This document shows, one piece after another, positions 22,796 to 63,748 of a stretch of 64,000 nt of DNA (positions within the stretch are counted from its first letter, which is position 1; each line of letters starts with the position of its first letter). The position numbers and the translations under genes were made by a program. This DNA comes from Anolis carolinensis (taxonomy: Eukaryota): assembly GCF_035594765.1 (NCBI RefSeq), contig NC_085846.1, positions 21,191,190 to 21,255,189 of the forward strand, given 5' to 3'. A model generated the notes under the pieces. That model saw nothing but the letters and a program-made list of their open reading frames with translations, was not told where the DNA came from and searched no databases.

Positions 22796-24809
22796 CTAGC
22801 TGTGCCCGGTCACGCGTTGCTGTGGCGAAGTCTGGTGGTATGGGAAATAAAGTATTGAGGAATTGGTGGTAGTTAAGGTAAAGGGTAAAGGTTTTCCCCA
22901 GACATTAAGTCCAGTCGTGTCTTACTCTGGAGGTTGGTGCTCATCTCCATTTCTAAGCCAAAGAGCCGGCGTTGTCTGTAGACTCCTCCAAGGTCATGTG
23001 GGATGACTACATGGAGCGGCGTTACCTTCCCGCCGGAGCAGTACCTATTGATGCACTCACATTTGCATGTTTTCGAACTTTTGCATGTTTTCCAACCCAG
23101 AAGCAGGGGCTAACAGTGGAGGCTTTCTTCACTCCCCCAATTCAAACCTGTGGCCTTTCGGTCCAGAAGTTCAGCAGCTCAGCACTTTAACACGCTGCGC
23201 CATCAGGGGATATTATTTCCTAAAGGTTGTGAATATACAATATTTCTGATTGGTTTTTTTTGTTTGTTGGAGGCAAGTATGAATGCTGCAATTAGGAAAA
23301 ATGATTAGGATGTAATGGCCTTGCAGCTTTAAAGCCTGGCTGTTTCCTCCCTGAGTGAATTTTTTGTTGGGAGGTGTTAGCTGGCCCTGATTGTTTCCTG
23401 TCTGGAATTCCCTTATTTTCAGAGTGGTGTTGTTTGTGATATTTATGTGCTTTATGTGCTTCTACTGTCTGTGGCCCTGAGAAAACAGGATTTGCCAGAG
23501 TTTGATGATGGGAATACTTTGTTGGGAGGTGTTAGCTGGCCCTGATTGTTTCCTGTGTGGAATTCCCCTGTTTATTTACTGTCCTGGTTTTAGAGATTAT
23601 TGTTCTGCATTATTCTATCCCAGTAATTATTTCATATTAAAGAAGAATCTCACTTATCCAACATTCGCTTATACAATGTTCTGGATTATCCAACGCAGTC
23701 TGCCTTTTCATAATCAATGCTTTTGTAGTCAGTGTTTTAAATTCATTGTGATATTTTAGTGGTAAATTTGTAAATACAGTACAGTAGAGTCTCACTTAGC
23801 CAACATAAACGGGCCGGCAGAATGTTGGATAAGCGAATATGTTGAATAATGAGGAATTAAGGATAACCCTATTAAACATCAAATTAAGTTATGATTTTAC
23901 AAATTAAGCACCAAAACATCATGTTAGACAACAAATTTGTCAGAAAAAGTAGTTCAGTACACATTAATGCTATATAGTAATTACTGTATTTATGAATTTA
24001 GCACCAAAATATCACGATATATTGAAAGCATTGACTACAAAAATGCGTTGGATAATCCAGAACGTTGGATAAGCGAGTGTTGGATAAGTGAGACTCTACT
24101 GTAAATACTACATAGCATTACTGCGCATGGAACTACTTTTTCTGTCAAATTTGTTGTATAATATGATGTTTTGGTGTTTAATTTGTATAACGATTACCTA
24201 ATTTGATGTTTAATTGGCTTTTCCTGAATCCCTTCTTATTATCCAACATATTCACTTATCCTGCTGGCCTGTTTACATTGGATAAGTGAGACTCTACTGT
24301 ATATTTCTAATCTTATATTATCTGCTTAGAACTGGATTATATGAGGCCCCTTCTTCACAGCTGTATAAAATGCACACTGAAGTGGATTATATGGTAGTGT
24401 GGAGTCAAGATAATCCAGTGCAAAGCAGATAATATAAGATTATAAATGGGTTATATAGCTGTGTTGAAGGGCCTTGAGTCTACACTGCCATATAATCCAG
24501 TGCAAATTAGATAATCTGTGGAAGAAGTCTAAGTGAGGCCTAAATCTGCCTGTCCCGTAACTGAAACCTGGCTGTCCCTTGGTTGCTAGGCAACCAAGTG
24601 GGCAGAGATTAGCCCTCTAAACTGGCAGCAATTGGATAAAAAAAATTATTGCTCTCCCTCTAATTAGGACTTTATTTTTCTTTTCTTTTTGTTGTATCAA
24701 CCTTGAGGCGTGGATGATGGGTTGTGTTGTCAAATTTTGAGGTTGGGGGGCCTGTACTTTTGTTGTTTTGTGAATTGCCGTGATGCCATCACTCTTTTAT
24801 ATATATAGA
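22796..24809 (-). mobile_element. Non-autonomous Helitron with cargo (copy 2), near-identical to 15600-17597
   Basis: Same termini and internal order; identical spurious 85-aa ORFs at 16290 and 23502; flanks unrelated. Confidence 0.88.
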
Positions 24810-26013: not shown

Positions 26014-26970
26014 CTACATGCTTTCAAATACACACAATTTAGCAACAACTTTCTTGAGGGCCTTCTTAACCTCCCTATTCCTCAAACTGTATATCAGGGG
26101 GTTGAACAAAGGTGTCAGGATTGTGTAGAAAAGAGAGAAGATTTTGTTGAGGTGTCTTAGTGCATCAGTTTTGGGCAACATGTAGACAATCATTATGGTG
26201 CCGTAGAAGGTGGCTACCACAATCAAGTGTGAGGAGCAAGTTGAAAAGGCCTTTTGCCTCCCACTTACGGATGGGATACCCATGATGGTAGATATGATAG
26301 AAACATAAGATGCCAAAGTCAACAAGAAAGGAGGTAGAGAACATATAGCAGCTAGAAGAGTAGTTAAAAGCTTAATCATGTGTGTGTCACTGCAGGACAT
26401 CTTTAATATTGGGTTGAAATCACAAAAGAAATGGTTGATTTTACCAGAGTCACAGAATTGTAACTGGCTCATTAAATATATTGTTATATTAATGGCCAAG
26501 GAACCACTGATCCAAGATCCAGCTACCATCTGGAAACAAACTCTGTCATTCATTAGTACTAAATAGAGCAGTGGCTTACATATAGCCACATATCTATCAT
26601 AGGACATTGCAGCGAGAAGATAGCATTCTGAAACTGCCAAGAAACCAAAAAAGTAGTATTGGGTCATGCAGCCAGTAACAGAAATGGTTCCTTGACCCCC
26701 ACTGAGAAGGTTGGCCAGCATCAATGGAAGGATATTAGAGCTGTAGCAAGTCTCCAGGCAAGACAGATTAACCAAAAAGAAATACATAGGAGTGTGGAGG
26801 TGCCGATCAACCACAACCAGTACAATGATGAGAATGTTACCAGCCATTGTCACAATATAGATCAGGAGGAAGAGGAAGAAGAGGAGAATCCGCCAATTTC
26901 CAATATCTCTAAACCCCAGCAATAGGAATTCAGTGAGTGCTGTTTTATTTTCCTGTTCTGTTTTGGCCAT
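26014..26970 (-). CDS. Olfactory receptor (class II), 318 aa, intact
   Basis: NKT sequon, LHTPMYFFLVNLS, MSYDRYVAICKPL, HFFCD, KAFSTCSSHL, PLFNPLIYSLRN; acceptor tttgcag about 16 nt upstream of the ATG. Confidence 0.96.
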   Translation of the reverse strand: MAKTEQENKTALTEFLLLGFRDIGNWRILLFFLFLLIYIVTMAGNILIIVLVVVDRHLHTPMYFFLVNLSCLETCYSSNILPLMLANLLSGGQGTISVTGCMTQYYFFGFLAVSECYLLAAMSYDRYVAICKPLLYLVLMNDRVCFQMVAGSWISGSLAINITIYLMSQLQFCDSGKINHFFCDFNPILKMSCSDTHMIKLLTTLLAAICSLPPFLLTLASYVSIISTIMGIPSVSGRQKAFSTCSSHLIVVATFYGTIMIVYMLPKTDALRHLNKIFSLFYTILTPLFNPLIYSLRNREVKKALKKVVAKLCVFESM

Positions 26971-27559: not shown

Positions 27560-28537
27560 CAGGGCCGGCCGGAGATAATTTTTAATGGGAAGCGGGGGTG
27601 CTGAAAAGCGCCCCCGCCACCGGCCCCGCCTCCCGCGCCCTGGCCCCGCCTCCCACGCTGCGTGGGAGGCGGGGCCATGGCGATTAGTGAGGGGGCGGGG
27701 CCACAGTTGGCCCCGCCCCCGCCCAGCGTGCCCTGGCCCCGCCTCCCACGCTGCGTGGGAGGCGGGGCCAGGGCACGCTGGGCGGGGGGGCGGGGCCAGA
27801 GTTGGCCCCGCCTCCCACGCTACTCCCACTCGCCCGTCTGGCCTTCCTAGCAGGCCAGAAAGCAGCGGAGGTCCCTCCAGGCCGCGATTGCGGCCTGGAG
27901 GGACCTCCGCTGCTTTCTGGCCTGGTAGGAAAGGCCAGACGGGCGAGCGGGAGTAGCGGAGGCGGAGCCAGCTCTGACGCCGCTCCCCCCCCCGCCCAGC
28001 GTGCCTTGGCCCCGCCTCCCGAGGCAGGGCCAAGGCACGCTGGGCGGGGGGGAGCGGCGTCAGAGCTGGCTCCGCCTCCGCTACTCCCGCTCGCCCGTCT
28101 GGCCTTTCCTACCAGGCCAGAAAGCAGCGGAGGTCCCTCCAGGCCGCAATCGCGGCCTGGAGGGACCTCCGCTGCTTTCTGGCCTTCTAGGAAGGCCAGA
28201 CGGGCGAGCGGGAGTAGCGTGGGAGGCGGGGCCAGCTCTGACGCCGCTCCCCCCCCCGCCCAGCGTGCCTTGGCCCTGCCTCCCACGCAGCGTGGGAGGC
28301 GGGGCCAAGGCACGCTGGGCGGGGGGGGGGAGCGGCGTCAGAGCTGGCCCCGCCTCCCACGCTACTCCCGCTCGCCCGTCTGGCCTTTTCAAGCAGGCCA
28401 GACGGGCCAGGGCGCACTGGGCGGGAGGCGGGGCACCGTCAGGGCGGTGCCCCGCCTCCCGCCCAGCCTGACGGCGCCCCCCCGGGCCTGCGCCCGAGGC
28501 GGCGGCGTCAGCTGCCGCATGAGTGGGGCCGGCCCTG
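27560..28537. mobile_element. Non-autonomous hAT element, GC/CpG-rich, internally palindromic
   Basis: 11-bp TIR cagggccggcc / ggccggccctg; 8-bp TSD aagagaga at 27552-27559 and 28538-28545. Confidence 0.9.
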
Positions 28538-32369: not shown

Positions 32370-32458
32370 TTATTTGTTTAGTCTGTCTGTAAAATCCAAG
32401 AAGCAAACGCATAGCAAAGAAATGCTGATGCCTAATTTTAAAAAACGGGGATTGTTAC
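32370..32458 (-). CDS. Candidate terminal exon of FN2 gene B (SNNPRFLKLGISISLLCVCFLDFTDRLNK*)
   Basis: Acceptor tttctgcctcagcag|GTAAC, phase-1 compatible; stop overlaps AATAAA (32369-32374). Speculative. Confidence 0.3.
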
Positions 32459-32577
32459 CTGCTGAGGCAGAAACATGATATAAAATTTTTACCAAGGCTT
32501 CTGGGTCTTCTAATCCTGATCCCCAGTAGGGCTATGACCCAAGGAACATTTATCACCTGCACTCTTCCCATTCTAGT

Positions 32578-32722
32578 AAAGGTAAAAGTTTCCCCTGACG
32601 TTAAGTCCAGTCGTATACGACTCTGGGGGTTGATGCTCATCTCAATTTCTAAGCCGAAGAGCCAGCGTTGTCCGTAGACACCTCCAAGGTCATGTGGCCG
32701 GCATAACTGCCTGGAACGCCAT
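32578..32722 (-). mobile_element. Sauria SINE, 3' fragment
   Basis: aaaggtaaaagtttcccctgacgttaagtccagtcg...ccaaggtcatgtggcc, matching the other copies in the window. Confidence 0.8.
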
Positions 32723-34511
32723 TCTAGCCCATGTTAAATGATTAGACTACTGCTCAAATAAAGGAGAAGGCAGAAGCATACTCTCAAAGTTTCCTGAATT
32801 TGCAGTGATGCTCCAAATTAATTCTCTTATTGTTCCACCTTCTCAATTTCTTTTAAAGTGCCCCAGTTTCTCTTTCCTCCTCTGTCCTTTGTTCTCAGTT
32901 TACTTCAGTTTCTAGAAACTGGTCTCAATTAATTTAAGGGTGGAAAGAGAAGGGGACAGCATCTTGCCTTTCCTGGTAGGTTCCTCCCAACATTTTACAA
33001 ATATCAGCACTTAATGCTTCCAAAAACATGAGTACAGAAGCATCCCATGGATCCTAAATCAGTGGATCCACAGGTTTGTCTTTGCTTTCCACTGAGAGTA
33101 GAGCACGTCACCTGTCCAAGGTCACCAAGTGAGTTTCCATGGCTAGACAAGTATTCAAAATCCTGTTCACCAGCACCATAATCCAATGCTCAGAATACTA
33201 TACCACATTGGTTTTCCAATACAGCTGGCTCTGCTATGTTTCTTGCACCTATCTATTTGCTAGAACAAGTATGTTCTTACCCGAAGGGTCACAGGGAGTC
33301 CTTTCTGGATTTGCATCATGGCTTGGCTTCTTGATAAGGACTAAAAGAACAAGAAGAACAACAATGAAGAAAAGGGAGTTAGTTATAATACAGCTCCCAG
33401 TCCACAGATTGTTGTGGAACACAAACGATGAAACCATCTCTCAGACGTTTAAGGCCCAAACTAGTTAAGGCATTAAACTTTAGTAGTTGGGACTTGATGC
33501 AATGTGCAACCTATAATGCTGAGACAGGCCATTCATCTATTATGGACTGGCACATTGTTGAAAAACCTTATGTTTTAAATCAAGATTTTAAAGGGTATAG
33601 ATGCTACAGAGATTTATGTGTTGTGAACATAGCTAGCTCTACAGAACCTACCAAACAAGCAGAGTAATATGTACAGCAGACATATATATAAACCTTCACT
33701 CAGATCTCATGTGAGAGGGCTCTCATGAGAGTTCTGGACTTCCACAAGAGTCTGGAATGTTTGCAAAACATGTTTCAGATTTATATATGTGCCTATATCA
33801 TATGTAACAGTTATTGATGAGCTGGTCTGGCAATACAGAAGGTAGTCCAGTATTGCTATCTGAAAACCCTAGAAACCATAGCTGGATCCCCCCTCCACCA
33901 ACTGAAAAGTTACCAGTCCCCAAAGCCAATCTCAGCAGTCCTGCCTGTAGCATTTGTTTCTTGAACAAAAAAAATCATTCATATATAAATATGGTAAATA
34001 AATAAATAAACACTTTTGTTTAACTTTCTCAAATACAACAACAATAAACCTAGGTCATTCCTGATACATCAATGAGGATATATTTATTCAAAACCTTTAA
34101 ACAAAAGAACTGGGTCCAAAGGAGCTTCCTCCTGTGACTTTACTGCCAAACTTGCTTTGACCTGTAATTAGGTGATGAGTACTACGATTATGCCATTTAT
34201 TGCTTCTCATAATGATATAGGACTATTTCAGTTCCTTCAAGTTTAAAATTATGCTGCATGACTGGTTTGAGGGCAAAATAATATGTGAAGTTTGAGTTGT
34301 AATTCGTTTTCCCCAACAAATTGCACACAAAATGTCTAGGGGCTTTTTATGAGCTCATCTACAAGGGCCTTAAAGAAGGAACAAATAAACTCAATGGCAT
34401 CCACATGACACACAGAACAGACTCACTCTTAGCACTGGGCAAGGCTGCTTAACACAGTCTTGCCCCACATTAGGCAAAGTCAGGGAATGGCCCTTCCCTA
34501 AAGTTCTAGCA

Positions 34512-34930
34512 CAGTGGTTCTCAACCTGTGGGTCCCCAGATGTTTTGACCTACAACTCCCAGAAATCCAGCCAGTTTACCAGCTGATAGGATAGCTCCTG
34601 GTGGCATAGTTGATTAAAGCCTTGTGACTTGAAGGTTGGGTTGCTGATCTGAAAGCTGCCAGGTTCGAATCCCACCCGAGGAGAGCGAGGATAAGCTCCC
34701 TCGATCAGCTCCAGCTCCATGTGGGGACATGAGAGAAGCCTCCCACAAGGATGATAAACATCAAAACATCCGGGCGTCCCCAGGGCAATGTCCTTGCAGA
34801 TAGACAATTCTCTCACACCAGAAGCGACTTGCAGTTTCTCAAGTCGCTCCTGACACGAAAAAAAAGCTGATAGGACTTCTGGGAGTTGAAGGCGAAAAAC
34901 ATCTGGGGACCCACAGGATGATAACCACTG
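34512..34930. mobile_element. hAT MITE containing a SINE insertion
   Basis: TIR cagtggttctcaacctgtgggtccccagatgtttt / aaaacatctggggacccacaggatgataaccactg; near-TSD ttctagca / ctctaaca. Confidence 0.8.
34592..34864 (+). mobile_element. tRNA-derived SINE with A-tail and 11-bp TSD
   Basis: A box tggcatagttg, B box ggttcgaatcc; TSD agctgatagga at 34581-34591 and 34865-34875. Confidence 0.85.
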
Positions 34931-35270
34931 CTCTAACACTTCCATGCACTTTGGGACATTGTGAACAGTTGGGCCTGTTTGGGGACTATCGCAGCAAAGC
35001 CATGAGTCTTTGGGGTGATGATATAGCCATAGTGGAGTCCCACCTGCAGAATTCTTATTCCACACTATGTGTAATCTGATCCATTTTCACAGGAAATGGT
35101 TCATATATTACGCGCACATATGTTGGATATTGTGCAAACAATGGCAACTTGAGTGTATGGATTTTATAGGCAGTGATAGGCAGCCCATTTTCGTTAGTGG
35201 GATACAAATACAAAAATGAAACTACACAACAAACAACAATTCCATACAAAAGCACAACACTAATACTTAC

Positions 35271-35435
35271 TGGTATCTGCACAGTAGCTCCATTTTCTGT
35301 CTTTATCAAAGTTGTTTGTTGTAGCACACCAGAACATCCGCGGTCTCACATGCTCATCTGTGCATGTATAAAACTTCCGTCCCTTATAAACAAAAGGGAA
35401 CACACAGGGTTGTCCATCTGTGTTCCCACCATGTT
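35271..35435 (-). CDS. FN2 gene B exon 3 (FN2 domain, type b, 165 bp)
   Basis: ttaacag|[55 protein letters not shown]|gtaagt; phase 1-1; four Cys. Confidence 0.9.
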
Positions 35436-35851
35436 CTGTTAAATACAAGAGAGACAGAATAGGTGTATGAGGGTCACAATCCAACATGAACACCTTTAAG
35501 CAAACATGGCATTGTTCCTCTTGAACAAGCGCTGTAGGCTGAAATGAAGAACCTCTTCCGCAGTCCCAGTGACAGCAGAGACTGACAGTCTTCACTCCCA
35601 ATCCCTTCAACATCCATTTTAACTTTCTCCATGCTTCTGCCTGCATGAAGAAAATAATCAGTGTTTGGAGGAGTGACAAGTTTGGTTGATGTTTTGCGTG
35701 GACAGTGGCAGCCAGCCTCCCCCTGCCAGGAACCTGCAAGCAAAGACAAATACAATGGTTTGGGATAACCAAAGGCCACAATTTGTTTATTGGTTGCAAT
35801 GAAAAAACTGGGTTGGCAGCCATGCATGGGTCCTGGATCATGCCTGGCTAC

Positions 35852-49613: not shown

Positions 49614-50223
49614 CTGAAATAAGCAACATAAAGCATGGGAAGAAAGAATTTCCATTAAAATACCTCACATGGGAGAAGATCCAAGGTCCCGATCTCAAAA
49701 GAAAGATGGGACAGAAATTAATAAATAATAATAAATAATAAGGTTGATTATAATGATGAGCAAAGGGATAAAGGTCTCTGTATCCTTGTGGCACAATTCT
49801 GAGCCAGATCAGTTTGTACATAGTAAAAAATGGAGCCAGACCAAGGTGACTACTATTATAATTTATAATTCGATAAGAGTTTCATGAAACTAATTGTTTC
49901 ACTTTGAACTGACTGAAATTGGTGCAAGGATGGAAACAAAAGAATGAGCATGTTAATGTATATTACTTGTGTAACTATGTAAGAAAAGGCATAGAATTAA
50001 GTAGTGGAAAGGAGAAAAACAGTAAAGTTCAACACAGAAGTAATTTATGTTTCAACCCCCTATTTCTGCGGATGGCACATAAGAGCAAAGGGAGGGGAGA
50101 GGAACTTCAATGATAAAATAAACAGGCAAAAGCAGTGTCAACTATAACCAACATCATATATAAGCTATGGGGAAAAAAACACTAGGAGGCCACTATCTGG
50201 AAGCATCTTGTGTGTTTTCTTAC

Positions 50224-50385
50224 CTGAAGGATCACAGTATGTCCACCTGGGGTTTGTGTCATAGTTACTGGTGAGAGAGCACCAGAGCTTTCCAGTGGAT
50301 GCCCCAGCAGTTGTGCAAGAGGAGTAGGACTTTCCCTTGTAAATAAATGGAAAGATACATGGCCCCTGAGAATTTGCAGCTAATC
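50224..50385 (-). CDS. FN2 gene A exon 4 (type c, 162 bp)
   Basis: tctccag|[54 protein letters not shown]|gtaaga. Confidence 0.9.
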
Positions 50386-51818
50386 CTGGAGAGATAGAAA
50401 GGAGTGGAGAAGGAAGAGAGAGAGGGAGATTACAGAAGTCTTCTTTTTCATTCATTAATGCTCCACACAGAGAAAACCTGCCTTCTCTCCTGTCCTGTAG
50501 CAGACCAGAAGATACCACACTAGGGAAAAGAACTTAGATGAATACTTCTAAACCAATTATATTTCCCCCAATTACACTCTGTAGATGGGTCCCCCATTTC
50601 TGTAGGCACAATAATTTAATTTTCTTTAGTTACTTTGCTCTTTAGACACTTTTCACTAGTATTCATTGTGGTCAGAAGTGTTTGGCATAAACAAATGAAA
50701 AGTAAGAAGAAAGCGTTTATGGTCAGTTCCCTTATATTTCCAAGACATATCATAGCCATTCCTCTTCTATGCCATGTTATGGATCATGTTACCTGATTTC
50801 ATATGGGTAGATGAAGGTGACATATACTGTGGGGCCAATAGTTTCTATAAGCCAGTACAGGCATTATATGATGATTAGTTAAAGTGTTCAACATTTTATC
50901 AAGTACTACTAACTGAGATTCCAGGAACCTCAGAGCTTGGGAAAGTGGTCAGTGGTCTTGCTGACTAAGGAATTTGAGGAACTTTTTAAAGACTTGCGGT
51001 GAAATGAACTGGTGGTCTTAGTTTTGTCCTCTATCAAAAAAAGGCACATCTACACTTACACTTATGTCAAACTGGGGCTGGATCGGTTACATGACAGCTA
51101 AATACCTTATGGAGCTGATCCAGGGTAATGCAGGGCAGGAACAACTTAAATACGGCTCTGCCCCATATTAATCACAGTCAGTGGGTAGTCTGAATTCTGT
51201 CCCAGAATTTGGACTATCCTTGACTTCTAAACATCTATCTAAACATTTAGGCTGGTTTCAGAATGGAACTGGTTGCAATTGTTTCCACCGCCATGCAGGG
51301 ACATGGGATGGCAGTTAGCATCTCCTCCTGTCCTCAGTGTGACAGTGGCCTCTGGACAACATGGTCCTACCTGTCAGCTGTTGCTTGCAGTGACATGCAC
51401 CAAGGTGATCTGGGAAGAGAGGAGAAGAGGAGAGAGAGCAATTCCTCTTCTCCCCTTCCCTCATTGCCATGTTGTCTGGCCAGCATCACTACAGGTGACT
51501 GCTGTCAGGTAAAACCCATTACACAGATGGAGACTGCCATGACAGAGAGGCCAGGAGGAGTAGTAAGCCTGCCATCCAGCAGTACCAAACCACATTTGTT
51601 TCTTCTGGGTAGTTGGGTCTCCATCCCACCTCTGTAGCAGCTGTGGGAGTGCCTGTCTGACACCAGCCTATGCCACACCAGACGGGCCCCAGAATATTGG
51701 ATCCATGTAGTTTCACACTAAGCTACTGCTTTCCATTGTTCTAAAAGGTAAGTTTCCCCATCTGTGAAATCCTACCTCAACCCTACAATACACATTGAGA
51801 TTCCCACAATATTCCTAC

Positions 51819-51983
51819 TTGTATCAGCACAGTAGCTCCATTGCTTGTCCTTATCATAACTTCCTGTTGTTGCACACCAGAACCTTCCGATTGCTGCATC
51901 TTCATTAGTACAGGTGTAAAATGTCCGTTTCTTGTACGTGAAAGGGAAGACACAGGGTTTCCCACCAGAATTGCCACCGTACT
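51819..51983 (-). CDS. FN2 gene A exon 3 (type b, 165 bp)
   Basis: ttttag|EYGGNSGGKPCVFPFTYKKRTFYTCTNEDAAIGRFWCATTGSYDKDKQWSYCADT|gtagga. Confidence 0.9.
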
Positions 51984-52220
51984 CTAAAAACAAAAAAAAG
52001 TGGGGAGAGGCAGACATACTCAGCTACACTAATGACACATTTCACTTTGTCACAGAGATTTCATTGCAATGCTTTTCTTTTTAAAAAAAATACTCTTTAT
52101 GAATATTTTATCATTACAATAATAAAAATAGTTAGATTTAGAGAAATAGATAAGAAATAGAAATAAAGATAATAGAAAAGAAAAGGATCCTAAGTATATA
52201 AGTGTGTATGTATATGTGTG

Positions 52221-52259
<39 letters not shown>

Positions 52260-53100
52260 TCGTATTTACCAAGTTGTTATTACATCATATGCTGTATATT
52301 TAACTCTTAATAAGAGACTAAAGAGACTCTCCACATTTTTTTTAGTGTGTGTTAGTATATTTTTGTAGAATGTAGACTTTTATCTTTCTCTCTTTTTCCT
52401 ACTTTTCTATACCTTGGTTGTTCTCACTCTTTCGGTGTAATATAAAAAATGTAATAAATTTCTTAAAAATAAGAGACTGTATAATTAGACCTTTGGCAAA
52501 ACAATTTTATACAATTTTGTGCACACTGCAGAACTGCACATTACAAACATTCCTATAGTTCCTTTTCCTGTTTCTTTATGCACATAGGAGGGTGACATTA
52601 CACTCTCTAAGCATCAAAAAAGGCAATGAGAAGCCCTCTATGAAGAAATTTTGCCCCCAAAAAAACCCTTGAAGGCATAGGAAAACATGAAATGTTCTAG
52701 CCCTTCCATATCTTGTTGATTGTCTACCTATCTAGTCATGCTTAATCAATTTCCCCTAACCTTGATCAAAACATGACTAAAAAAAAATAGGCATAGGATC
52801 AGAGGGTATAAGGAGACAAAGTTTTAATCAGTAGCAATGCATATATTTTAAATAAGCAATGAAGCTCCACATGGGACACATAGAAAAGAAGTCATAAAAT
52901 GCATCTAAAAGCTTAAACAGTGCTCACTCTTGAGAATCACAATTCTAGGTTCTATGAAGTACAGTGTCATATTTAAATGTTTCCTTTCTAACAGATTATA
53001 TGTCTATTTCATTTCATTTCTCCGCAGCATCTGAAGGCTCATGAGGGCAGCACAAAAGCTTTGGAAGGTCAGATTTTTTTAAAAAAAGAAAACTTTTTAC

Positions 53101-53244
53101 CTTGAGGGGAACAATACTTCCACTTAGGAGATGTATCGTAGTTTGCAGTTGTGGCACACCATGTCTTCTCACCTGTTCCAATGTTGGTGCATGAAGAATA
53201 AGATTGCCGGTGGTAAATAAATGGAAAAACACAGGGTGGTGGGA
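53101..53244 (-). CDS. FN2 gene A exon 2 (type a, 144 bp)
   Basis: tttccag|VPPPCVFPFIYHRQSYSSCTNIGTGEKTWCATTANYDTSPKWKYCSPQ|gtaaaa. Confidence 0.9.
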
Positions 53245-53711
53245 CTGGAAAGAAAACAGAACACAGCAAATATTTTGGAGATCATTTTGGGGTAAAATGA
53301 AATTCACACAAAAACAACCCAGTGGGGCAGGATTCCCCACCACTAGAGCAAAGAATGTAAGAGCACATTTTTGCTCTTGCAAATATTTGCATGTACATAG
53401 TTTTCCTGACACTTGTGTATGCCCCACTTGAGGGTTACTGTGGTGATTGGCATTCCTCTCTCCCTTCACTGCATCCAGCTCCCCCTCCCCTGACTTACTG
53501 TATAGCATCTGAAGGGCCAACATACATACAGAGAAAAAGAGAGATGTAGAGAGTCAATTCCATGCCTTGTGGGAAGCTGGCAAGTTTGGAGATGGATCTG
53601 GCTAGGCCCGTGTAGCCAAACACAAAATGATAACAATGGTGCTAATATCTACTGAGAGCCTCTGCAATCATTTTTCATCTGGCTACAAGCTTCTCTGATT
53701 CTGCGTGATCC

Positions 53712-53983
53712 CGAACAATGGCTTCAAACTACAGGAAAGGAGATTCCACCTGAACATCAGGAAGAACTTCCTCACTGTGAGGGCTGTTCGACAGTGGAAC
53801 TCTCTGCCTCAGACTGTGGTGGAGGCTCCTTCTTTGGAGGCTTTTAGGCAGAGGCTGGATGGCCATCTGTCGGGGGTGCTTTGAATGCGATTTCCTGCTT
53901 CTTAGCAGGGGGTTGGACTGGATGGCCCATGTGGTCTCTTCCAACTCTACTATTCTATGATTCTATGATTCTATGATTCTATG
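53712..53983 (+). mobile_element. CR1 LINE 3' end
   Basis: ggaagaacttcct...ggttggactggatgg...ttccaactct followed by an (attctatg)n tail. Confidence 0.9.
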
Positions 53984-54534
53984 CGTGCTCCCCATGAAGC
54001 ACACAATGGCTGTATGGGTAGGAGATTTCAAAGGCTGTACAATAAACCCCAGGGTGCTAGTAAATAGCTCAACCCAGTATACCTCCACATGTAGAAAAGA
54101 GATCAGGCAATCCCCTACATTATCCAATTTCCATAAGGAAATGAAGACCTGGTGGTGTCGGCAGGTTTTTCAGTAATTACATTGGAATACCGCCAATTTC
54201 TGGGCCTGAATATATTGCACAAGATTTCTCTAACTTAAAATGATACATTTTAATATATTGGGTTTATGGTTCCCGTCCCCTTGATCAGGTCATGCAAGTG
54301 TTATTTATTTCTATAATTGTATTTTTACTTTGCTTAATAATGTGTTATTGTGTTTGCTATGTAATGTTTGTATTGTTTTTATGATTGGAAACCGCCCTGA
54401 GTCCCATCCGGGAGATAGGGCGGTATATAAATAAAGTTTTATTATTATTTATTATAGAACTACTGTGTTACGCTCAGTCAATTGGAATTTAAGCCATTGA
54501 GTACCCACCTCCCAGTATCAAAACATGACTAAAG

Positions 54535-54830
54535 GAAATCATAGCATTGAAAGAAACTGCATGAACCATCCAGTCCGACCCCCTGCTATACAAGAATGCA
54601 CTATCAAAACATTCATGACAAATGGCCATCCAGGCTCTGTTTAAAAACTCCAAAGAAGGAGACTCCACTACTTTCTGAAGCAGTGTATTCCACATGAATA
54701 GCTATTGCCATCTGGAAGTTCTTCCAAATGTTCAGGTGGAATATCTTTTAATGCAATTTAAATCCATTCCTCTATGTCCGAGTCTCTGGAGCAGCAGGAA
54801 GCAGACCTGTTCCACCTTCTAGATCCATTC
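54535..54830 (-). mobile_element. CR1 LINE 3' fragment, degenerate
   Basis: Reverse-complement similarity to 53712-53983 (ggccatccaggctct, ggaagttcttcc, gttcaggtggaat). Confidence 0.75.
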
Positions 54831-54910
54831 TAACTGAAAATCAGTGATATGCTACCCCAGGTAGGATGAATGATAAAGATATATAATTATATATAGAGAA
54901 AGAGTCTTAC

Positions 54911-54977
54911 CATCCCCTGTAACAAGCAGTGGTAAAAGGGCAGAGGCACAGAAGAGGAATATCATGATGAAAGCCAT
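54911..54977 (-). CDS. FN2 gene A exon 1 (signal peptide); BSP/ELSPBP1-like secreted multi-FN2 protein, about 334 aa in total
   Basis: gaaATGG; MAFIMIFLFCASALLPLLVTGD+G|gtaaga; phase 1 joins exon 2 in frame. Confidence 0.85.
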
Positions 54978-55008
54978 TTCGTTTTCCCTTTGCATTGGCC
55001 AATAAACT

Positions 55009-55016
55009 CTTTTATA
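55009..55016 (-). promoter_or_regulatory. Candidate TATA box of FN2 gene A
   Basis: TATAAAAG about 32 nt upstream of the ATG. Confidence 0.45.
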
Positions 55017-56605
55017 CATGTGGCTAGGCTATTTTGGATCAGAAATACAAACCTCTAATGTTTGAACAGTTAACAGTAAAGTAATATGTAAATCAGACAG
55101 TCACTGCCATTCCAACGAACGTTAAGGTGTTTGTCTTTCCCCCCCACCCTTAGCAGACATGCTGAGCAAAGTTATGAAGTTCAACAGTTATTTAACAAAT
55201 ATGAAACATGAATGCTACAAGTATCAAGAAATCCAATGAAATGATATCATCTTTTAAACATGGACAAGCCACACAATGAATTATGGGCAAATGATATTAG
55301 GACTAGTTGATACCACTTGAAAAGTTTGTGTTCAGACTTATAATTAATTTTGACTTAATCACTTCAAAGACAGGCTCTCATTCATCCCAGTCGGTCTATG
55401 AGAGATGACTGTAGAATGTTACTGGGAGACTTCTAAAATAATATGTGGCCATGTAGCCATCTTTCTTTCATAGTCCATCCTTCCATCAGCCATCAAACAT
55501 ATCATTCCTGCTTTTTTGGGAAACATTGCATCTCATATTGCTGTTTTAAAAATATTCAGAGCCACACCATTTATTCTGAAAAGATTAGCACTAGAAGGCA
55601 TAAATGGTACCACGTTACAAATAGCACTGAGATTAAGGGGTGCTTTGATCTCCTCCTCAAATCAAAGCCAGGGTAAAAAGCATTCGGCAACATGTGCAGG
55701 AGACAGAGCAATGGCTAATAAGGACCAGTCCAGGCCCTCATGATTGTCTTCAGCTTTGATTTAGGACCCATTCTAAGTGCTGTGTTTCTTTTGCTGGTCT
55801 CCTTGGGGCCAAGTAGGATTTTTCTCCTTTATCTAGTTGTTTTATACTGTATTGGGGACTTTGATAATGGGCTAAGGGTGGTATCTGTAACTAGTTCATC
55901 CCTAGCAAGTATTGAGGGGGGAAATATATGAGTTTGGTGTACCTTGGCACCATATTGGCAAAATGGAGTTCTGAAATGGCTTTTTCCAGTTTTGTGATGA
56001 AAGGGATTAACCTGAGGAGATTGCTCTTTCTATTAAAATCCTGTAATTTTGAAGATGTCCTGTGCTTGGCTTACAGTAAATAGCCAGCCAGAATGAGCAA
56101 CACGTGGTATTGAATTGCCCTCAGGATCAGTTGTTTTACCCAATTGAGGCTTGGAAGTGGCCAAAGGTTGACATCTGGCCTTAACCAGAACCACATACCC
56201 CCCCCCCCATGTTTTGCTCATTCCCAGACATAATTTGATAAATAGGTTCTAGGACAAAAAGAAATTGCCCTTTTTTTAAGCCACTTCACTGTGTCTGTCT
56301 TATTACTGCATGGTTGGTCTGGTCATCAAATAAGTTCTCCTGGTTAGTTGGAGATCTCAGCCAACTGTTTCTTCAGGTTCTACAAGGAAAGCAAGAGCCA
56401 GAAACAGGATTTCCTTTGGCTGAAATATTTTCTACAGGGAAATACTTAAATATCTTCAAAATTTTTAGGTGCAGCAGGTCCTTCCCACTTGGTTGCACTC
56501 CATCGAGAAAAGGCAGTCTGGCTTTGCAAAAATGCCAACCTCAGAAAATCTGCTAAATATGTGGTGGGTTTTGCTGACATCCCTACTTTCCAATGTGTTT
56601 CTTCC

Positions 56606-56646
<41 letters not shown>

Positions 56647-56675
56647 AATAGTGACCCTATTTTTTCACTCATCAT

Positions 56676-56788
56676 CAGTGGCTCCCAACCTTTTGGCCTT
56701 AAGGTGTTTTAGACTTCAATTCCCAGAAATCCCAGCCAGCTTATCAGCTGTTAGGAACTGTGAGAGGCCCAAAGGTTGGGAACCATTG
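56676..56788. mobile_element. Short hAT MITE
   Basis: cagtggctcccaacctttt / aaaggttgggaaccattg inverted termini. Confidence 0.7.
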
Positions 56789-56849
56789 ATCTACTCAAAC
56801 ACAAATGACCTCCTATATATACAATTGAAAATGAACCAGTTCAGTAAAC

Positions 56850-57965
56850 AATATGTCTGGCAAATTAGTATACTGTTTAAATTCACAGTAATATCAAACA
56901 CCATCAAATGGATTGTCCAATATACATTGAAATGCAGTCGGCGTTAAATTCACAGTAATAACAAGCAGCCTCAAATGGATTGTCCAATATACATTGAAAT
57001 GCAATCAGCGTTGTGTATTCTAATGCCGAGAAGAGTAAGTCTGCCACGACCGGTTTCGGCCCTGCATCAGGCCTTCCTCTGGTGGTCTGAAAATAGTTAC
57101 GTACACTAACATAAGTAACAAAATATATCCATAAAACATCATCCATTGCCTAATACTAACATGGTTCCAAACTTAACACTTGTTCTCTTTAGAGATACAT
57201 GTCATTTACATTGTGAAATGTATATCAAAGACACCAATAGTTACATACACAAAATATAAGTAACTACCTATCCATTGAATAACAACTATAAAAAACATTG
57301 CAATATACTTACACAGTTCCAAATTTAACACTTGTTCTCCTTAGAGATACATGTTTTTTACAGTGGAATCTAGGTCAAAGGAACAAGGAGTGGCCATAAG
57401 CATTAAAGAGTTACATACATCCAAAAAATTGTTTTTAAACAAATTGTATATTTCTAAAACAGTATATACTCACGGGATACTCTGCTGTGTGTTGGATTCT
57501 AATTGCGAGTATGAAAAGCATCAAGGGGTTGCCTCAATTTAAAGGAGAAAATGTTAAAGAAACAGAGAGGTTTATTTAAAGATATAGAAGAAATTACCAC
57601 CAGATGGTGCTATGAGTACCCTTATTGTATTGGGTGTATTCAATTAGGGATTTATAGTATGATAAGGTTCTATATATAACAACTGTATGAATTTTGTTCA
57701 TTTAAGCCCTGTGGATGTTCTGTCCGTAATCTGAAAATCCAATATGTTTCCCTTTGCAAAAGTTTATTATTGAAGTCCATATGTTTGGATTGTGATACTA
57801 CTTCTAGTATGTGGTATTTGAATGATTCAGGACTATGCTGTAGATCATAGAAATGTTTGTACAGTATGGATTCTCTGGCATGATTTCGTATTTTGCTCCT
57901 GTGCTCTATAATTCTCTTAACTTCTCGACGAGTCTGCCCCACATATGATAAATTACAATCACCAT
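56850..57965 (-). mobile_element. Penelope-like element remnant (GIY-YIG endonuclease C-terminus plus 3' repeat region)
   Basis: CNLSYVGQTRR..RIIEHRS..HF..LLQRETYWIFRLRTEHPQGLN at 57670-57960; downstream direct repeats and a hammerhead motif. Confidence 0.82.
57044..57085 (-). ncRNA. Minimal type I hammerhead ribozyme motif in the Penelope element (core variant CAGAGGA)
   Basis: ccac-CAGAGGA-a-ggcc(tgatgcag)ggcc-GAAA-ccgg-TC-gtgg. Confidence 0.65.
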
Positions 57966-58359
57966 TGATCTATACACACAATATTTGCATATTAATAAAA
58001 AAAATGCACAGTTGACATTCTGATCATTCTGAGATAACTTTGTTTATACAATCAAGGCCATACCTTATGAACACAAATAACTTCCTCAATAAAAAAAATT
58101 CAACAGAATTTGGTCTGTGTACAAAAAGGATTTACATAAAATACACCAAAGATTTTCTCAGAAGTTATTTCCTCTCTTGTAACGCTAGTCTTTGTTCATC
58201 CTTGCCGCCCTATATGAGAGCCATGCGTGAGTTAGGGCCTTTTACCCTAGCACTCAAGACCTGGCTCTTTACTAGAGCTTTTAATCTGTGTTAATTTTAT
58301 TAATATTTTTATGTATGTATTTTTATCCTTTACAATTTTATCTTGTAAATCGCCTAGAG

Positions 58360-59280
58360 CAGGGGTCCCCAAACTAAGGCCCGGGGGCCAGATGCGGCCC
58401 TCCGAGGTCATTTACCTGGCCCCCGCCCTCAGTTTTATAATATAATATATTGTATATACATATAATATTGATAATAATATTATAATGTAATACAATATAA
58501 CACTAATAATAATACCATATAATAATATTAATTATATGTTCTATATTACATATAATATTACTAATAATATTACAGTATAGTGGTATAGTTCAATATCTAT
58601 ATATATAAAAGAGTGATGGCATCACGGCGACCCACAAAACAACAAAACTACAGGCCCCCCAACCTCTAAATTTGACAACACAACCCATCATCCACGGCTC
58701 TAGGTTGATACAACAAAAAGAAAAGAAAAATAAAGTCCTAATTAGAGAGAGAGGAATAATTGCTTTTATCCAATTGCTGCCAGTTAGAAGGCTAAGCTCC
58801 TCCAACTTGGTCTCCTAGCAACCCAATAAAAAATAATAAAAAACACTAAAAATAATTAAAAACACTAAAAAAATTAAAACAATAAAATACTATAACAGAA
58901 AATAACTAAAAATAATACAAGAAAATAATAAAATATAATAAAAAGATAACTTACAATAAAATTTATAAAAAAAAATACAAATAACGTCAAATAAAAATTA
59001 CACAATTTTTAACCAATACCACCACCACTTTGCCACAGCAACGCGTGGCTGGCCACAGCTAGTAGTAATATATAATGCTAATATTGTGCTATGCTAATAA
59101 TATAATATATTGTATGTACATATAATTTGTAAGCCACTCTGCGTCCCTTTTGGGGTCAGAAGGGTGTGATACAAATGTAGTAAATAAAGGCAGTAAATAA
59201 ATAAATAATAAATAAATAAATTTTAGACTTAGGCTCGCCCAAAGTCTGAAATGACTTGAAGGCACACAACAACAACAACG

Positions 59281-59313
<33 letters not shown>

Positions 59314-59590
59314 GCAATCCTAATTAAGTTGACTATCTCACTGGCCAGAAGCAGGACCACACTTCCCATTGAAATCCTGATCAATGTTTGTTGGTTAAAA
59401 TTGTTTTTATTTTTAAATATTGTATTGTTCTTTCATTGTTCTTGTTGTTGTTGTTTTTGCACTACAAATAAGACATGTGCAGTGTGCATCGGAATTTGTT
59501 TGTATTTTTTTTTTCAAATGATAATCCGGCCCCTCAACAGTCTGAAGGATTGTGGACCGGCCCTCGGCTTAAAAAGTTTGAGGACCCCTG
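58360..59590. mobile_element. Non-autonomous hAT element
   Basis: TIR caggggtccccaaact / agtttgaggacccctg; 8-bp TSD gcctagag at 58352-58359 and 59591-59598. Confidence 0.92.
58596..59062 (+). mobile_element. Short non-autonomous Helitron (467 bp, copy 3, no cargo)
   Basis: a|TCTATATATATAAAAGAGTGATGGCATCACGG ... GCCACagcaacgcGTGGCtggccacagCTAG|t. Confidence 0.88.
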
Positions 59591-59632
59591 GCCTAGAGCA
59601 TCGTGGATGGAGGGCGATTAATAAGTAATTAA

Positions 59633-59667
<35 letters not shown>

Positions 59668-59800
59668 CTCTGTCAAACATTTGATGTTAGGTGTCTTTGT
59701 ATATGTGTGATTCCTTTGTCAATCCAAATATCAAGATTGTATTTATGTAACAGAGAAGTTTCCACTCACAAAGTATTTGAATAAGAAAATGGATACCCAG

Positions 59801-60063
59801 AAGGCATGTAGCTGGGGGGGGGGGGGGGACTTGAGGGGCTTCAGCCCCCCTCCCGAAATTCTCAGGGCGGTCCACAAGAAGGCCTTACATTTATTATTTA
59901 AACTGTTATGTTTATTCATATCATGATCTGATCACCATGCTCAATATATTCCATATGCATGGGAGTATTGGGATAACGATACAAAAGGTTTGCTAGGGTT
60001 AATCCTCTCCCACCCAGACTCAGCCCCCCCCCCCCCAAAATCAAAATCCTGGCTACGGGCCTG
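59801..60063. mobile_element. hAT MITE with poly-G/poly-C subtermini
   Basis: aaggcatgtagct / ggctacgggcctg termini; near-TSD atacccag / atacccaa. Confidence 0.7.
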
Positions 60064-62169
60064 ATACCCAACAACAATAATGTCTTTTAAAATTCCTTGG
60101 TTGCACTATATCCTTTGTATATTTTAAAATCAAGAATGTGCTCCAGTCACTACTTTCCAGTCCAAAGAAAAAAATACTAAATGCCAGTGCCCTCTGAAAT
60201 TTTCTACTACTTTGAGAATTAGAGACCATGTAATAATTTATGGATTATCAAGCACAAGCAGTCTATTCTGTATTGACATCATCAGATGGTAAAGCATTAT
60301 TGTAAACTGTAAAATACTGTATCTGTTATACACACTTAAGAATAAACACCAATGAATCTCCCTTTTGTGTGACTTACCATTTTTAAGTCTTTAGACTAGG
60401 ATCACTGTACGTTAGCTAGAAACCATATAACAACAAATTGTCACCCACTCTTAAGACCTTATCTCATGAAGAGGGGCAGGAGAGAAGTGGGGAAAGCAGG
60501 TGAAAGCAGAGGGAATCATCTTGTTTTGTTTGTTACTGTGGAGGTACTGTGCCTTTCTGTATTCAGAGATGGCAGCCATCCCGTGTCCTTTCCCCAGCTT
60601 CTCTCCATTTTCTGGCATTGAAAGTTGGGAAGCATCTGATCCAGAACATGCGGTCTTTCCTCTTTTTCCCTGCTCTGTCACAATGGAGTCCCATGGTCAG
60701 CTACCAGAAATGGCCTTACGCCATGTGATGGCCTCCATGGGACTCTGTTTCAGCAACACAGAGAAATGGAGTGAAGATTGTGTGGGATGAAGTCCTTAAA
60801 ACACTTACATTTTGTGGCTTTGGAGTGCAATGGATCCTGGGAGTTGTAGTCCAAAAATTACTTTTCCATGCTCTGATTTCTCACCTGCACCTCATTCAGA
60901 ACCATTTCCAGCATATGAACAGCCCAACAGATATTAAAGTTCGACAAAACGTTTTTCGGGATGTAACAATAGAGAGATTCCCTGAGAAATTCAGCCAAAG
61001 AACTGTGTAGCAAGCCTCTCACGGGAGAAGGCCAACCTGGGTCTCAAATGAAGTTACTTTTCTATTAAAATGTTATTATCTGTCTTTGTTCGCCTTTGTT
61101 CCCAGTCTTCCGAGGGCCAAAATAGGGAGTCACCTCTTCTTGCATCCTTGCAACTAGGGTTGGCATATTACACCCTCTCCATTTCTGATAGTTAGGATAT
61201 TATGTAAATTATTAGAATTATTCATAATATTAATTCTTATTATGAAATTTCAATACATTAATGATGGTTTCTGTAATAGCACTTAGTTTCATCCTTGCTG
61301 TTGTTATTTATAGTTACTACAGTCAACCCAACACGTTCTCTGGGGTTAAGGTGTAAGATCCTCACAAAAGTGGGAAAACTGAATAAAAAATCTGAGAAAA
61401 CACTTTTCGGTAAATATCTAGATCCTCCAGGGCAACTCTACAATCAACTTTTACCAGGTGTCGACTGTAGAGTGATGCACAAGGACTTGCAAATGATGGG
61501 AGAAATTGTCTCTTGAGGAATCTCTTGGTCCTCCAAGAGACAATGGACAAATAGCAATACTAGACAAATAGCAATACTAGAAGATCTGGAAATTCTAAGA
61601 AAACATATTAATCAAATCCATAAATAATCAAATGTGAAAGGTAAAACCCATAAATGTGGAGGGCTGACTGAGCTCTCCTGATAGAACTAGAATAGTGTTT
61701 ATGGTGCTGGATTTGAAAGCACTATAAACACATGACAAATTCATATTAATCCTGGAATTTGCCATGTGATTTTGGACTACCATTATATCTCAGCAAAACT
61801 ACCTTCTATGGTTGCTCTGCTTGTACCACTCCACAACCAATTCTACCAAAAAAAAAAAAAAACAGCCCCCACATACTATAACCATTAAGAACAGTTGGCT
61901 CCTTCAATAGGCCCCCTCAATATGCCTGACACAAGGAAGATGGAATGGCACCATTGGTCCATGTATAAAGCAAGGAACCGGCCCAACTTTTCATATTACT
62001 CTAAAGTGCCAGGGCTTCAGGGAAGTTCCAGCGCATTTCCTGACATTTCCCAATGTGAGTAAAACAACATTAACCTACTTTGCTTCATGATGGGGGTGAG
62101 AATGTCCATGTGGGTATCAAAGGGCATGTTTTCACCCACTTCAATTATCTGGCCCATTTAGATGGACAC

Positions 62170-62425
62170 TAGAACACAGAGCAATGTATTCAAAGAACAG
62201 GAAAAGAGATTCCATCTAAACATCAGGAAGAACTTCCTGAGAACAAGAGCTGTTTGACAGTAGAATAATGTACTGACTCAGAGTGTGGTGGGGTCTTCTT
62301 TTCTGGGGGTTGTTAAACAGAAACGGTATGGGCATCTGCTGAGAGTAATTTGACTGTGTCTCCTGTGTGGCAGGAGGTTGGACTGGATAGCCCTCGTGGT
62401 CTTTTCCAACTCTAGGATTTTGTGA
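62170..62425 (+). mobile_element. CR1 LINE 3' fragment, degenerate
   Basis: catcaggaagaacttcct...ggttggactggatagccc...ttccaactct. Confidence 0.78.
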
Positions 62426-63586
62426 ATTTTATAAAAGAGTCACAAAATAATATGCCTATATGGGATCCAAACACAGGAAACAAGATGAACAAGTATTCCA
62501 TCATGGCATGCTGCCAAAAGACTTTATTTCTGATTTTGGAATGATCACATCAGAATAGAATCACGTGAACAATGGCAGCCTCCCGGTATGAACCAATGAT
62601 ATCTACTGCATAAATCATCTTTAACAACCTAGAAAGAGAAAAACAAAAAATAAAACCCCTTTATAAAGTCATTCTGCTAGCACAATATAACCATAACCAG
62701 AGATCCAAAAGAAGATGTCAACATACAAAGGTCATAACAAATGCCCATGCCAATTAAAAATATCTACAGCTAGCATCAAAATTAATGTAAATCCAAAGCA
62801 ATGAGCTTAGACAAGTCAGTGTTGATTTCACCCATCTTTGATTTGTATTTTTTATGTTAAACATGAACATATTTATCAATTTTTTAAAAAAATCTCTGGT
62901 TTCTCTTCAGATTGTATAAATCTTTTGCCTTTTTAAAAAAAATCTTGTAAAAAGAAATTAAAACAAAATTCTTGGCAGCAATTGGAGAAAATAAACATTT
63001 AAAATGTAAACCTATCGGAACTGATAATTTTTTTCAAGTATAACTCCAACCAAAGATAGATAGCTAGATAAGTACACTCTGAACACTGAGGTCCTCTGGG
63101 GAGCGTCTGCTCCAACCTGCCAGAACCCGACTGACAACTGTAACACAGAGGACCTTTCTACTGGCGACCCACAACAGAACAACCTGCCATTTAGCTCTGA
63201 CAGCTAAATCAACTGGCAGAATTTAAAACACAAGTGAAGACCTATCTCTTCCAGAAGGCCCAACAGATAGTTTTAATGACAAATTTTAAACTTCCACTCT
63301 ATTTCTAACTTTTTTGTGTATTTTAATATGTATATTATGGAAATATGTTTTAATATGTGTGATTTAAATGATTATGTGTTTTGATTACTTGTTTTAGCAA
63401 TGTTTTAACCCGCCATAAGCCATGAGGAGAACAGGTAAAAAATAAAATTACCATTATTACCATTATCATTATTTAAGCTGATTTCATTTATCACCTGGAG
63501 ACTTCTCACAATACTCTTATTCCTGACAAAACACCCAATAGTACCTGCAAGCTTTGCCATCACTTCCCATTTCCAATTTTATTTAC

Positions 63587-63748
63587 CTTAATAAGTACAG
63601 TATGCCCATCTAGGATCCACATCATAGTTACTGGTGAGAGAACACCACCGTTTCGAATTATATATCCCAGCTGATGTACAGGAGGAGTAATTTTGGCCTT
63701 TGTAGATGAAAGGAAAGACACATGTCCCTATGGAATTGGCATCTATTC
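63587..63748 (-). CDS. FN2 exon (type c, 162 bp) ending in a stop codon; last coding exon of a third paralogue (gene C) extending beyond the window
   Basis: Not in the ORF track. ttccttccag|RIDANSIGTCVFPFIYKGQNYSSCTSAGIYNSKRWCSLTSNYDVDPRWAYCTY*+G|gtaaat. Confidence 0.88.

Follow-up and report, generated by a model that had tools for sequence, protein, structure and literature searches.

A tandem cluster of predicted secreted FN2-only genes of the ELSPBP1-like family in Anolis carolinensis

Secreted proteins in which the fibronectin type II (FN2) module is the only fold include mammalian ELSPBP1, a signal peptide followed by four modules, and the Binder of SPerm (BSP) proteins PDC-109/BSP1 and BSPH1/2. 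The same fold, encoded as one module per exon, occurs in MMP2, MMP9 and fibronectin. The aromatic pocket of the module holds phosphorylcholine head groups in BSP and ELSPBP1 and collagen-like peptides in fibronectin and MMP2/9. Here we describe a 64,000-nucleotide stretch of the Anolis carolinensis genome (contig NC_085846.1, positions 21,191,190 to 21,255,189; "the window" below, with positions counted from its first letter) that contains two complete FN2-only genes, A and B, and the end of a third, gene C. NCBI names all three "epididymal sperm-binding protein 1", or ELSPBP1(-like). As the original prediction supposed, these are RefSeq models with automatic names, which across the family range over ELSPBP1(-like), fibronectin-like, MMP9-like and HSP-1-like.

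BSP proteins have been reported only from mammals, and the available BSP phylogeny covers mammals only; it places the mammalian ELSPBP1 locus between CABP5/LIG1 and BSPH1/BSPH2 (PMC4557993). A reptile-specific expansion of ELSPBP1-like genes was noted in a 2014 preprint. For the related reptile sequences called ESP, Hargreaves et al. reported no evidence of a role as venom components and an unclear orthology (10.1101/006031), and a review credits this class to a lizard oral-gland cDNA study (PMC8708286). We found no open-access paper combining ELSPBP1 with Anolis, lizard or snake, and nothing relevant in the literature on the renal sexual segment.

We consider it highly probable that the window carries three tandem genes of the ELSPBP1-like family on the same strand, each encoding a cleavable signal peptide followed by a string of FN2 modules, with one module per phase 1-1 exon. 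Gene A would originally have encoded six modules, five of which remain intact, the sixth exon having been cut short by a 37-bp deletion; gene B would be the squamate orthologue of a three-module turtle gene, its third module reduced to a mini-exon of 20 residues; and gene C would encode seven modules. The three proteins may act as secreted multivalent binders through the aromatic pockets of their modules.

The evidence for the modules themselves is direct. A six-frame motif scan and tblastn over the whole window, which contains no N, identified exactly nine FN2 exons (A1 to A6, B1, B2 and C1), spread from 35.3 to 63.7 kb and every one of them on the minus strand. A tblastn search of the window with the nine translations found no tenth copy, only a short remnant near 33300. 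All nine exons passed the Pfam fn2 profile (PF00040; 42 positions, gathering cut-off 22.2 bits) with E values of 6e-16 to 6e-21 and 58-75 bits; eight cover the full profile (positions 1-42, 64-75 bits) and A6 covers positions 1-37 only (58.6 bits). A pyrimidine tract and AG stand before each exon, whose first two bases complete a codon (phase 1). Seven of the nine also end one base into a codon before GT, the exceptions being C1 and A6, and exon sizes recur at 144/147, 165 and 162 nucleotides. The nine phase-1 exons with GT-AG sites that had been proposed from the sequence were confirmed by the scan, by tblastn and by the Pfam check that had been suggested for them. The two separate 67-nucleotide signal-peptide exons (54977-54911 and 40899-40833) lie exactly where they had been placed, each followed by GTAAGA; no DNA homology was found between the two signal-exon regions.

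In an alignment of the modules, four conserved cysteines (two disulfides) and the conserved aromatics are present in eight of nine. Among the pocket residues, the Trp before the third Cys is kept in 9/9 modules, the Trp before the last Cys in 8/9, the Tyr of the FxY position in 8/9 and the Tyr of NYD in 7/9, although these aromatics do not discriminate between ligands, as gelatin-binding modules have them too. The RefSeq products of the three genes match the exons at 100% and contain PF00040 and no other Pfam domain, in agreement with the expectation of FN2-only proteins free of protease or other domain exons. Full-length comparisons were made with these database proteins rather than with joined spliced models. 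A signal peptide, and with it the secretion foreseen earlier, is well supported for the predicted products of genes A and B by their hydrophobic N-termini, which are kept among homologues. The coordinates of all features are collected in the table.

Table. Coding exons of the three FN2 genes and neighbouring olfactory-receptor genes in the window
Feature	Position	Strand	Evidence
Gene C last coding exon C1, type-b FN2	63587..63748	-	Pfam fn2 E 3e-19
Gene A first exon	54911..55019	-	P0191 starts here; N-terminus kept in seven homologues
Exon A1, type-c FN2	53101..53244	-	Pfam E 7e-18; A1-A2 junction in contigs
Exon A2, type-a FN2	51819..51983	-	Pfam E 5e-18; both junctions in contigs
Exon A3, type-b FN2	50224..50385	-	Pfam E 4e-20; A2 and A4 junctions in contigs
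Exon A4, type-c FN2	49467..49613	-	Pfam E 6e-21; A3-A4 junction in contigs
Exon A5, type-a FN2	47310..47474	-	Pfam E 2e-20; contig letters beyond A4 fit
Exon A6, truncated type-b FN2	46033..46187	-	Pfam positions 1-37 of 42; skipped by RefSeq model
Gene A terminal coding exon (RefSeq)	45009..45031	-	23 nucleotides: 7 residues and TGA
Gene B signal-peptide exon	40833..40899	-	67 nucleotides from ATG; 100% to P0089 residues 1-22
Exon B1, type-c FN2	38936..39082	-	Pfam E 1e-18; 100% to P0089
Exon B2, type-a FN2, donor GTAAGT	35271..35435	-	Pfam E 9e-18; 100% to P0089
Gene B 60-nucleotide mini-exon	33281..33340	-	tblastn remnant; in P0089, P0151, P0152
Gene B alternative terminal coding exons	32317-32295, 31536-31505, 28630-28593	-	three isoform C-termini
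Three olfactory-receptor genes	6924-7862, 20619-21632, 26014-26970	-	open reading frames of 312-337 amino acids; Pfam 7tm_4 E 1e-44 to 1e-48

Three types of module can be told apart: c (A1, A4, B1), a (A2, A5, B2) and b (A3, A6, C1). A profile of the nine modules retrieved 5,271 FN2 proteins from a representative protein library, and the modules of retrieved proteins were compared against the three types; genes A and C were found among database proteins by a word search seeded with a six-module Hemicordylus protein. The order c-a-b recurs in squamate proteins of 3, 5, 6, 9 and 11 modules. The order c-a-b-c-a-b is found in Rhineura, Tiliqua, Lacerta, Sceloporus, Varanus and Hemicordylus; the variant c'/a'-a-b-c-a-b, whose first module is typed with a small margin only, is found in Pantherophis, Anolis sagrei and Pogona. 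Heteronotia, Phrynocephalus, Python and A. sagrei have three cassettes, and Paroedura and Euleptes still longer module strings. The five-module order c-a-b-c-a is shared by snakes, Podarcis and gene A, and turtles have c-a-b. Squamate relatives carry 2 to 11 FN2 modules, as expected of a lineage-expanded family with variable domain number, but the family extends beyond squamates, with FN2-only relatives in turtles, palaeognath birds, monotremes, frogs and ray-finned fishes.

The domain-level tree that had been proposed as a check was built with ELSPBP1 and MMP modules and without BSP or FN1 sequences, which did not occur among the hits listed; it has 80 rows and 54 columns, and many of its forks are open. 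Type-b modules form a clade (97/98). B1 groups with domain 1 of Sceloporus, Zootoca and turtle proteins (97/90) and B2 with domain 2 of the same proteins (100/94), A2 groups with domain 2 of Sceloporus and Pseudonaja (95/90), and A6 is sister to Sceloporus domain 6 (100/95). A2 and domain 2 of the Pseudonaja protein share 89% identity. The gelatinase modules stand apart in a clade of their own (99/97), from which all modules of the window are excluded. Both the order of types and position-specific orthology across species thus place the anole genes with the squamate c-a-b cassette proteins. Modules 2 and 5 of gene A pair with snake and Sceloporus modules of the same position, the A2 pairing being starred in the tree and the A5 pairing weak. 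Because of this same-position pairing and the c-a-b-c-a(-b) order across squamate families, the data agree with a cassette duplication in gene A that is older than the anole-snake split, not an anole event. On the grouping of B1 and B2, gene B is the orthologue of the turtle c-a-b gene with three FN2 modules.

How, then, do the anole genes compare with the described systems? They resemble mammalian ELSPBP1 in encoding a signal peptide and then FN2 modules only, with 37-48% identity between mammalian ELSPBP1 and squamate proteins over most of the length. In contrast, none has the mammalian set of four modules orthologous to modules 1-4, genes A, B and C having five, two (plus a remnant) and seven, and each of the mammalian modules falls in a mammal-only clade of its own (that of module 1 without echidna). 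The mammalian locus, with the gene order LIG1-CABP5-ELSPBP1-BSPH1-BSPH2-SULT2A1-CRX, also lies beside CABP5/LIG1 and BSPH1/BSPH2, whereas the anole genes lie among olfactory-receptor (OR) genes; in the window and within 10 kb of the relatives, only OR and FN2 genes were seen. The relationship between the anole genes and mammalian ELSPBP1 is at best many-to-one.

Gene B shares with the BSP proteins the number of two modules, and type-b modules score 69 bits against PDC-109, but gene B is the orthologue of the turtle gene and not of a BSP. Among reptile sequences, gene A matches the five-FN2 proteins of snakes in module order and grouping, including ESP-Cyl-1 (M9T5P6) of Cylindrophis ruffus, which is also c-a-b-c-a and among the nearest relatives of A1-A5. 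ESP-Vkom1 (E2E4K4) of Varanus komodoensis belongs to the same family, but to the six-module group and not that of gene A. Unlike the anole genes, the ESP cDNAs are known only as oral-gland transcripts of a snake and a monitor. MMP2, MMP9 and fibronectin share the fold and the exon arrangement and provide the best solved-structure matches, but the anole gene models lack catalytic, hemopexin, FN1 and FN3 exons. An origin from a gelatinase FN2 insert, hinted at by the best PDB matches, was ruled out by the domain tree.

Gene A corresponds to RefSeq protein P0191 (304 amino acids), matched by the window exons at 100%, at 21.226-21.256 Mb of CM069372.1 in GCA_035594765.1; its flanks are an FN2 gene with a 443-amino-acid product (gene C) and one with a 158-amino-acid product (gene B). 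The first exon contains a TATAAAAG box (TATA box) at 55016-55009. The RefSeq model begins at the upstream ATG 55019, which overlaps this box, and therefore the shorter start at ATG 54977, 67 nucleotides from the donor, is more likely. High-copy interspersed repeats occupy 53602-53983 (also 54175-54556) in the first intron, where summed contig depth reaches 1e4 to 1e6 in four runs and many contigs break.

The original prediction named the lack of expression in any tissue as an outcome that would speak against it, and spliced RNA of gene A was found in Logan contigs. A single contig of about 1.29 kb, present in X4 and X9 (small contig sets from one study), joins 53101|51983, 51819|50385 and 50224|49613, which correspond to the junctions predicted for A1-A2, A2-A3 and A3-A4 and have GT..AG ends on the strand of the gene. 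A further 169 contig letters past A4 fit A5 (165 nucleotides) and GTA(A); a 43-letter piece of this part sits on the paralogue A2 at 51816-51858, which is the best local match between A5 and A2. GTAA opens both the A5 intron and the terminal exon at 45031, so that the contig stops there. A6 opens with GACT, which the contig letters after A5 do not fit, and this argues that A6 is not the main exon after A5. The remaining sets gave unspliced low-depth pieces only (X5) or nothing outside repeats (X21).

Gene A had been predicted to have six FN2 modules. Six exons are present, but only five modules are intact (c-a-b-c-a), and the RefSeq model ends not in A6 but in the exon at 45031-45009: P0191 is without A6 sequence, and its C-terminal peptide was placed in that exon behind an AG acceptor. 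Aligned with the intact sixth exon of Sceloporus, A6 shows a clean 37-bp deletion with conserved flanks on both sides. The deletion took the final Trp-x-Tyr-Cys, the stop and the leftover donor, so that the fourth Cys and last Trp are gone and the frame reads on to a TAG at 46035-46033. The ratio of nonsynonymous to synonymous substitution rates (dN/dS) against Sceloporus is low (0.11) in the first 41 codons of A6, which suggests a recent truncation or an exon still used in a minor isoform.

Gene B is RefSeq P0089, which its signal exon, B1 and B2 match at 100%; the isoforms on record are P0089, P0151 and P0152. The signal exon is kept in A. sagrei, Sceloporus (77%), Eublepharis and Zootoca. 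Two modules had been predicted and two were found, but the gene also contains four further coding exons, one of them the remnant of a third module. Aligned at the DNA level with A3 and C1, this mini-exon proves to be what is left of the 3' end of a third FN2 exon, of type b; its donor is preserved and its 20 residues are still coding. The Zootoca orthologue of gene B, P0108, has a similar stretch after its second FN2 module. The C-terminal peptides of the three RefSeq isoforms were each placed behind an AG acceptor, and gene B reaches down to 28593, beyond the lower limit of 32370 given for the cluster at first. The intron between B1 and B2 contains a 151-bp tandem repeat (36500-37184; 4.5 copies, 98% identity), which yields a run of overlapping 100-amino-acid open reading frames (ORFs) on the plus strand. 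In the first intron, a 163-amino-acid ORF without a Pfam hit (40011-40502, minus strand) looks like the tail of a transposable-element protein.

Gene C is represented in the window by its last exon, as had been thought. C1 matches at 100% residues 343-394 of P0177, a 394-amino-acid ELSPBP1 isoform of A. carolinensis with seven FN2 modules; the gene has a recorded product of 443 amino acids as well. An in-frame TAA at 63590-63588 stands directly before the leftover GT donor, and an AATAAA poly(A) signal follows within ten bases, at 63583-63578.

As to function, a choline phospholipid, whether of membrane or of sperm, is our tentative first choice of ligand, though at slightly less than even odds; collagen or gelatin would be a distinctly less likely ligand, and other ligands take up the remaining probability. 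Several observations weigh against the view of three secreted ELSPBP1-like proteins set out above. In the domain tree the mammalian ELSPBP1 modules take no resolved position among types a, b and c, and no one-to-one partner of mammalian ELSPBP1 emerges among the anole genes. By sequence the modules are equally close to those of gelatinases and fibronectin and to PDC-109, and therefore the ligand cannot be read from similarity. In addition, the X4 and X9 contigs give no depth over the signal exon of gene A, and the contig is unspliced from A1 up to the high-copy repeat at about 53742. Where a transcript starts is not visible from contigs, and the missing depth may come from assembly tip-clipping, by which short terminal exons can be lost. 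The 5' end of gene A thus rests on the RefSeq model and on conservation. An alternative signal exon was looked for between 53245 and 53742 and none was found.

One possibility, which we regard as doubtful but the best placed of the alternatives, is that the label "ELSPBP1" is a misnomer. The c-a-b genes would then be a distinct, old sauropsid family of multivalent secreted binders, which may be at least as old as the ancestor of turtles and squamates, with a glandular use (oral, nasal or other) rather than a use in sperm, its domain number changing by cassette duplication and exon decay, and held inside an OR cluster.

Somewhat less probable is that these are oral or venom-gland secretory proteins, the "ESP" class of toxicoferan reptiles, unrelated to sperm. 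ESP-Vkom1 and ESP-Cyl-1 are members of the family, the modules of gene A group domain by domain with ESP-Cyl-1 and the five-FN2 snake proteins, and the class itself is traced to lizard oral glands by the review cited above. However, the ESP libraries sampled oral glands only, and the verdict of Hargreaves et al. on venom function and orthology bears on this proposal as well.

We give a similarly small probability to the proposal that the proteins are collagen- or gelatin-binding extracellular proteins (in matrix, clearance or defence), working as the FN2 modules of fibronectin and MMP2/9 do. When whole chains are compared, MMP9, MMP2 and fibronectin are the best matches among solved structures for each of the three module types, but such whole-chain scores sum three modules. 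Compared with a single MMP2 module, PDC-109 has the same score or a higher one for types b and c, whereas for type a the single MMP2 module scores higher than PDC-109. The modules of the window also lie outside the gelatinase clade, and in solved structures the same pocket serves both classes of ligand.

The Sceloporus comparison bears on the two weakest alternatives. The synteny check proposed for squamates gave a colinear arrangement: on the Sceloporus undulatus locus (L006), orthologues of A1-A6 are followed by those of signal exon B, B1 and B2 and by an OR gene, all arranged and oriented as in the anole. Each of A1-A6 has a single counterpart, at the matching position, among Sceloporus domains 1-6, and B1/B2 correspond to domains 7/8. 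Signal exon B has 77% protein identity and lies inside a 952-nucleotide block of 71% DNA identity. In the intact sixth exon of this locus, a closing TGA stands just ahead of GT. Exon-wise dN/dS is 0.19 for A2, 0.23 for A3, 0.11 for A4, 0.21 for A5, 0.16 for B1 and 0.05 for B2; the A1 value is unreliable owing to a one-codon indel, and only exon-wise values were relied on. At dN/dS of 0.05-0.23, the genes are under purifying selection.

That the genes are decaying duplicates without function, as the truncated A6 and the remnant third module of gene B might suggest, is very improbable given intact frames and splice sites, this low dN/dS, spliced RNA contigs, and a gene B remnant kept as a coding mini-exon with a similar stretch in Zootoca. 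Equally improbable is that the exons belong to a single larger gene with several kinds of domain, or that A and B form one transcription unit. In Sceloporus model P0174 the orthologues of A6 and B1 are joined, and Eublepharis and Euleptes models end in B-like modules. But the Sceloporus sixth exon has its in-frame TGA before GT, so that a non-canonical donor would be required for the join as modelled; a conserved signal exon B stands between the Sceloporus genes, the Eublepharis model reads straight through such a peptide, and stand-alone B orthologues exist in Zootoca and turtles.

An origin of genes A and B by fission of a nine-FN2 gene, to which the eight-FN2 Sceloporus model had pointed, was ruled out by the Sceloporus signal exon B between the genes, by the TGA before the donor of domain 6, and by the stand-alone gene B in Zootoca and turtles. 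As for the database models, Sceloporus P0174 (L006 16451-22817; eight FN2 modules) fuses the domain-6 exon to the first FN2 of the next gene, and because that exon ends in TGA just before GT, the fusion is probably an artefact. Eublepharis P0221 reads through an internal peptide like signal B, and the model is likely fused. Zootoca P0173 combines OR and FN2 domains, and the model appears to fuse neighbours.

The OR cluster thought to adjoin the FN2 genes is present. Three intact OR genes lie downstream of gene B on the same strand and, with a long interspersed nuclear element (LINE) reverse transcriptase, make up the first 27 kb of the window; an OR gene also follows the gene B orthologue in Sceloporus. 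The LINE copy lies between OR genes as an intact 757-amino-acid ORF at 12722-14995 on the plus strand (RVT_1 E 5e-37). Identical spurious tblastn matches at 15685-16707 and 22881-23919, offset by about 7.2 kb, fit two near-identical element copies flanking an OR gene. Between the OR gene at 26014-26970 and the distal terminal exon of gene B, a GC-rich tandem repeat (27637-28402; periods 93 and 262) contains long Pro/Ala/Gly-rich ORFs on both strands, with 47% GC versus about 37% elsewhere.

Further FN2 genes were seen at wider distance and in other species. About 350 kb away, at CM069372.1 20.866-20.892 Mb (locus L003), the anole FN2 gene P0231, with four near-identical type-a modules, has OR genes to either side; the OR cluster is thus interspersed with FN2 genes. 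In Malaclemys terrapin (CM051177.1 3.19-3.22 Mb, locus L004), the c-a-b gene stands tail to tail with a four-module FN2 gene of 241 amino acids, so tandem FN2 clusters occur in turtles too. Within 10 kb of the Pseudonaja gene, no further FN2 exon and no OR gene were found.

All three genes are already annotated and belong to a known kind; the original prediction was essentially right. Multi-FN2 secreted proteins and a reptile expansion had already been noted, and therefore the general view of the family is unchanged. What is added here are the exact exons of three anole genes, the c-a-b cassette rule, a dated loss of exon A6, a remnant mini-exon that still codes, the microsynteny with OR genes, and the flagging of fused or misnamed database models. 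This reference anatomy opens the way to a tissue atlas of the family and to work on phosphorylcholine versus gelatin binding.

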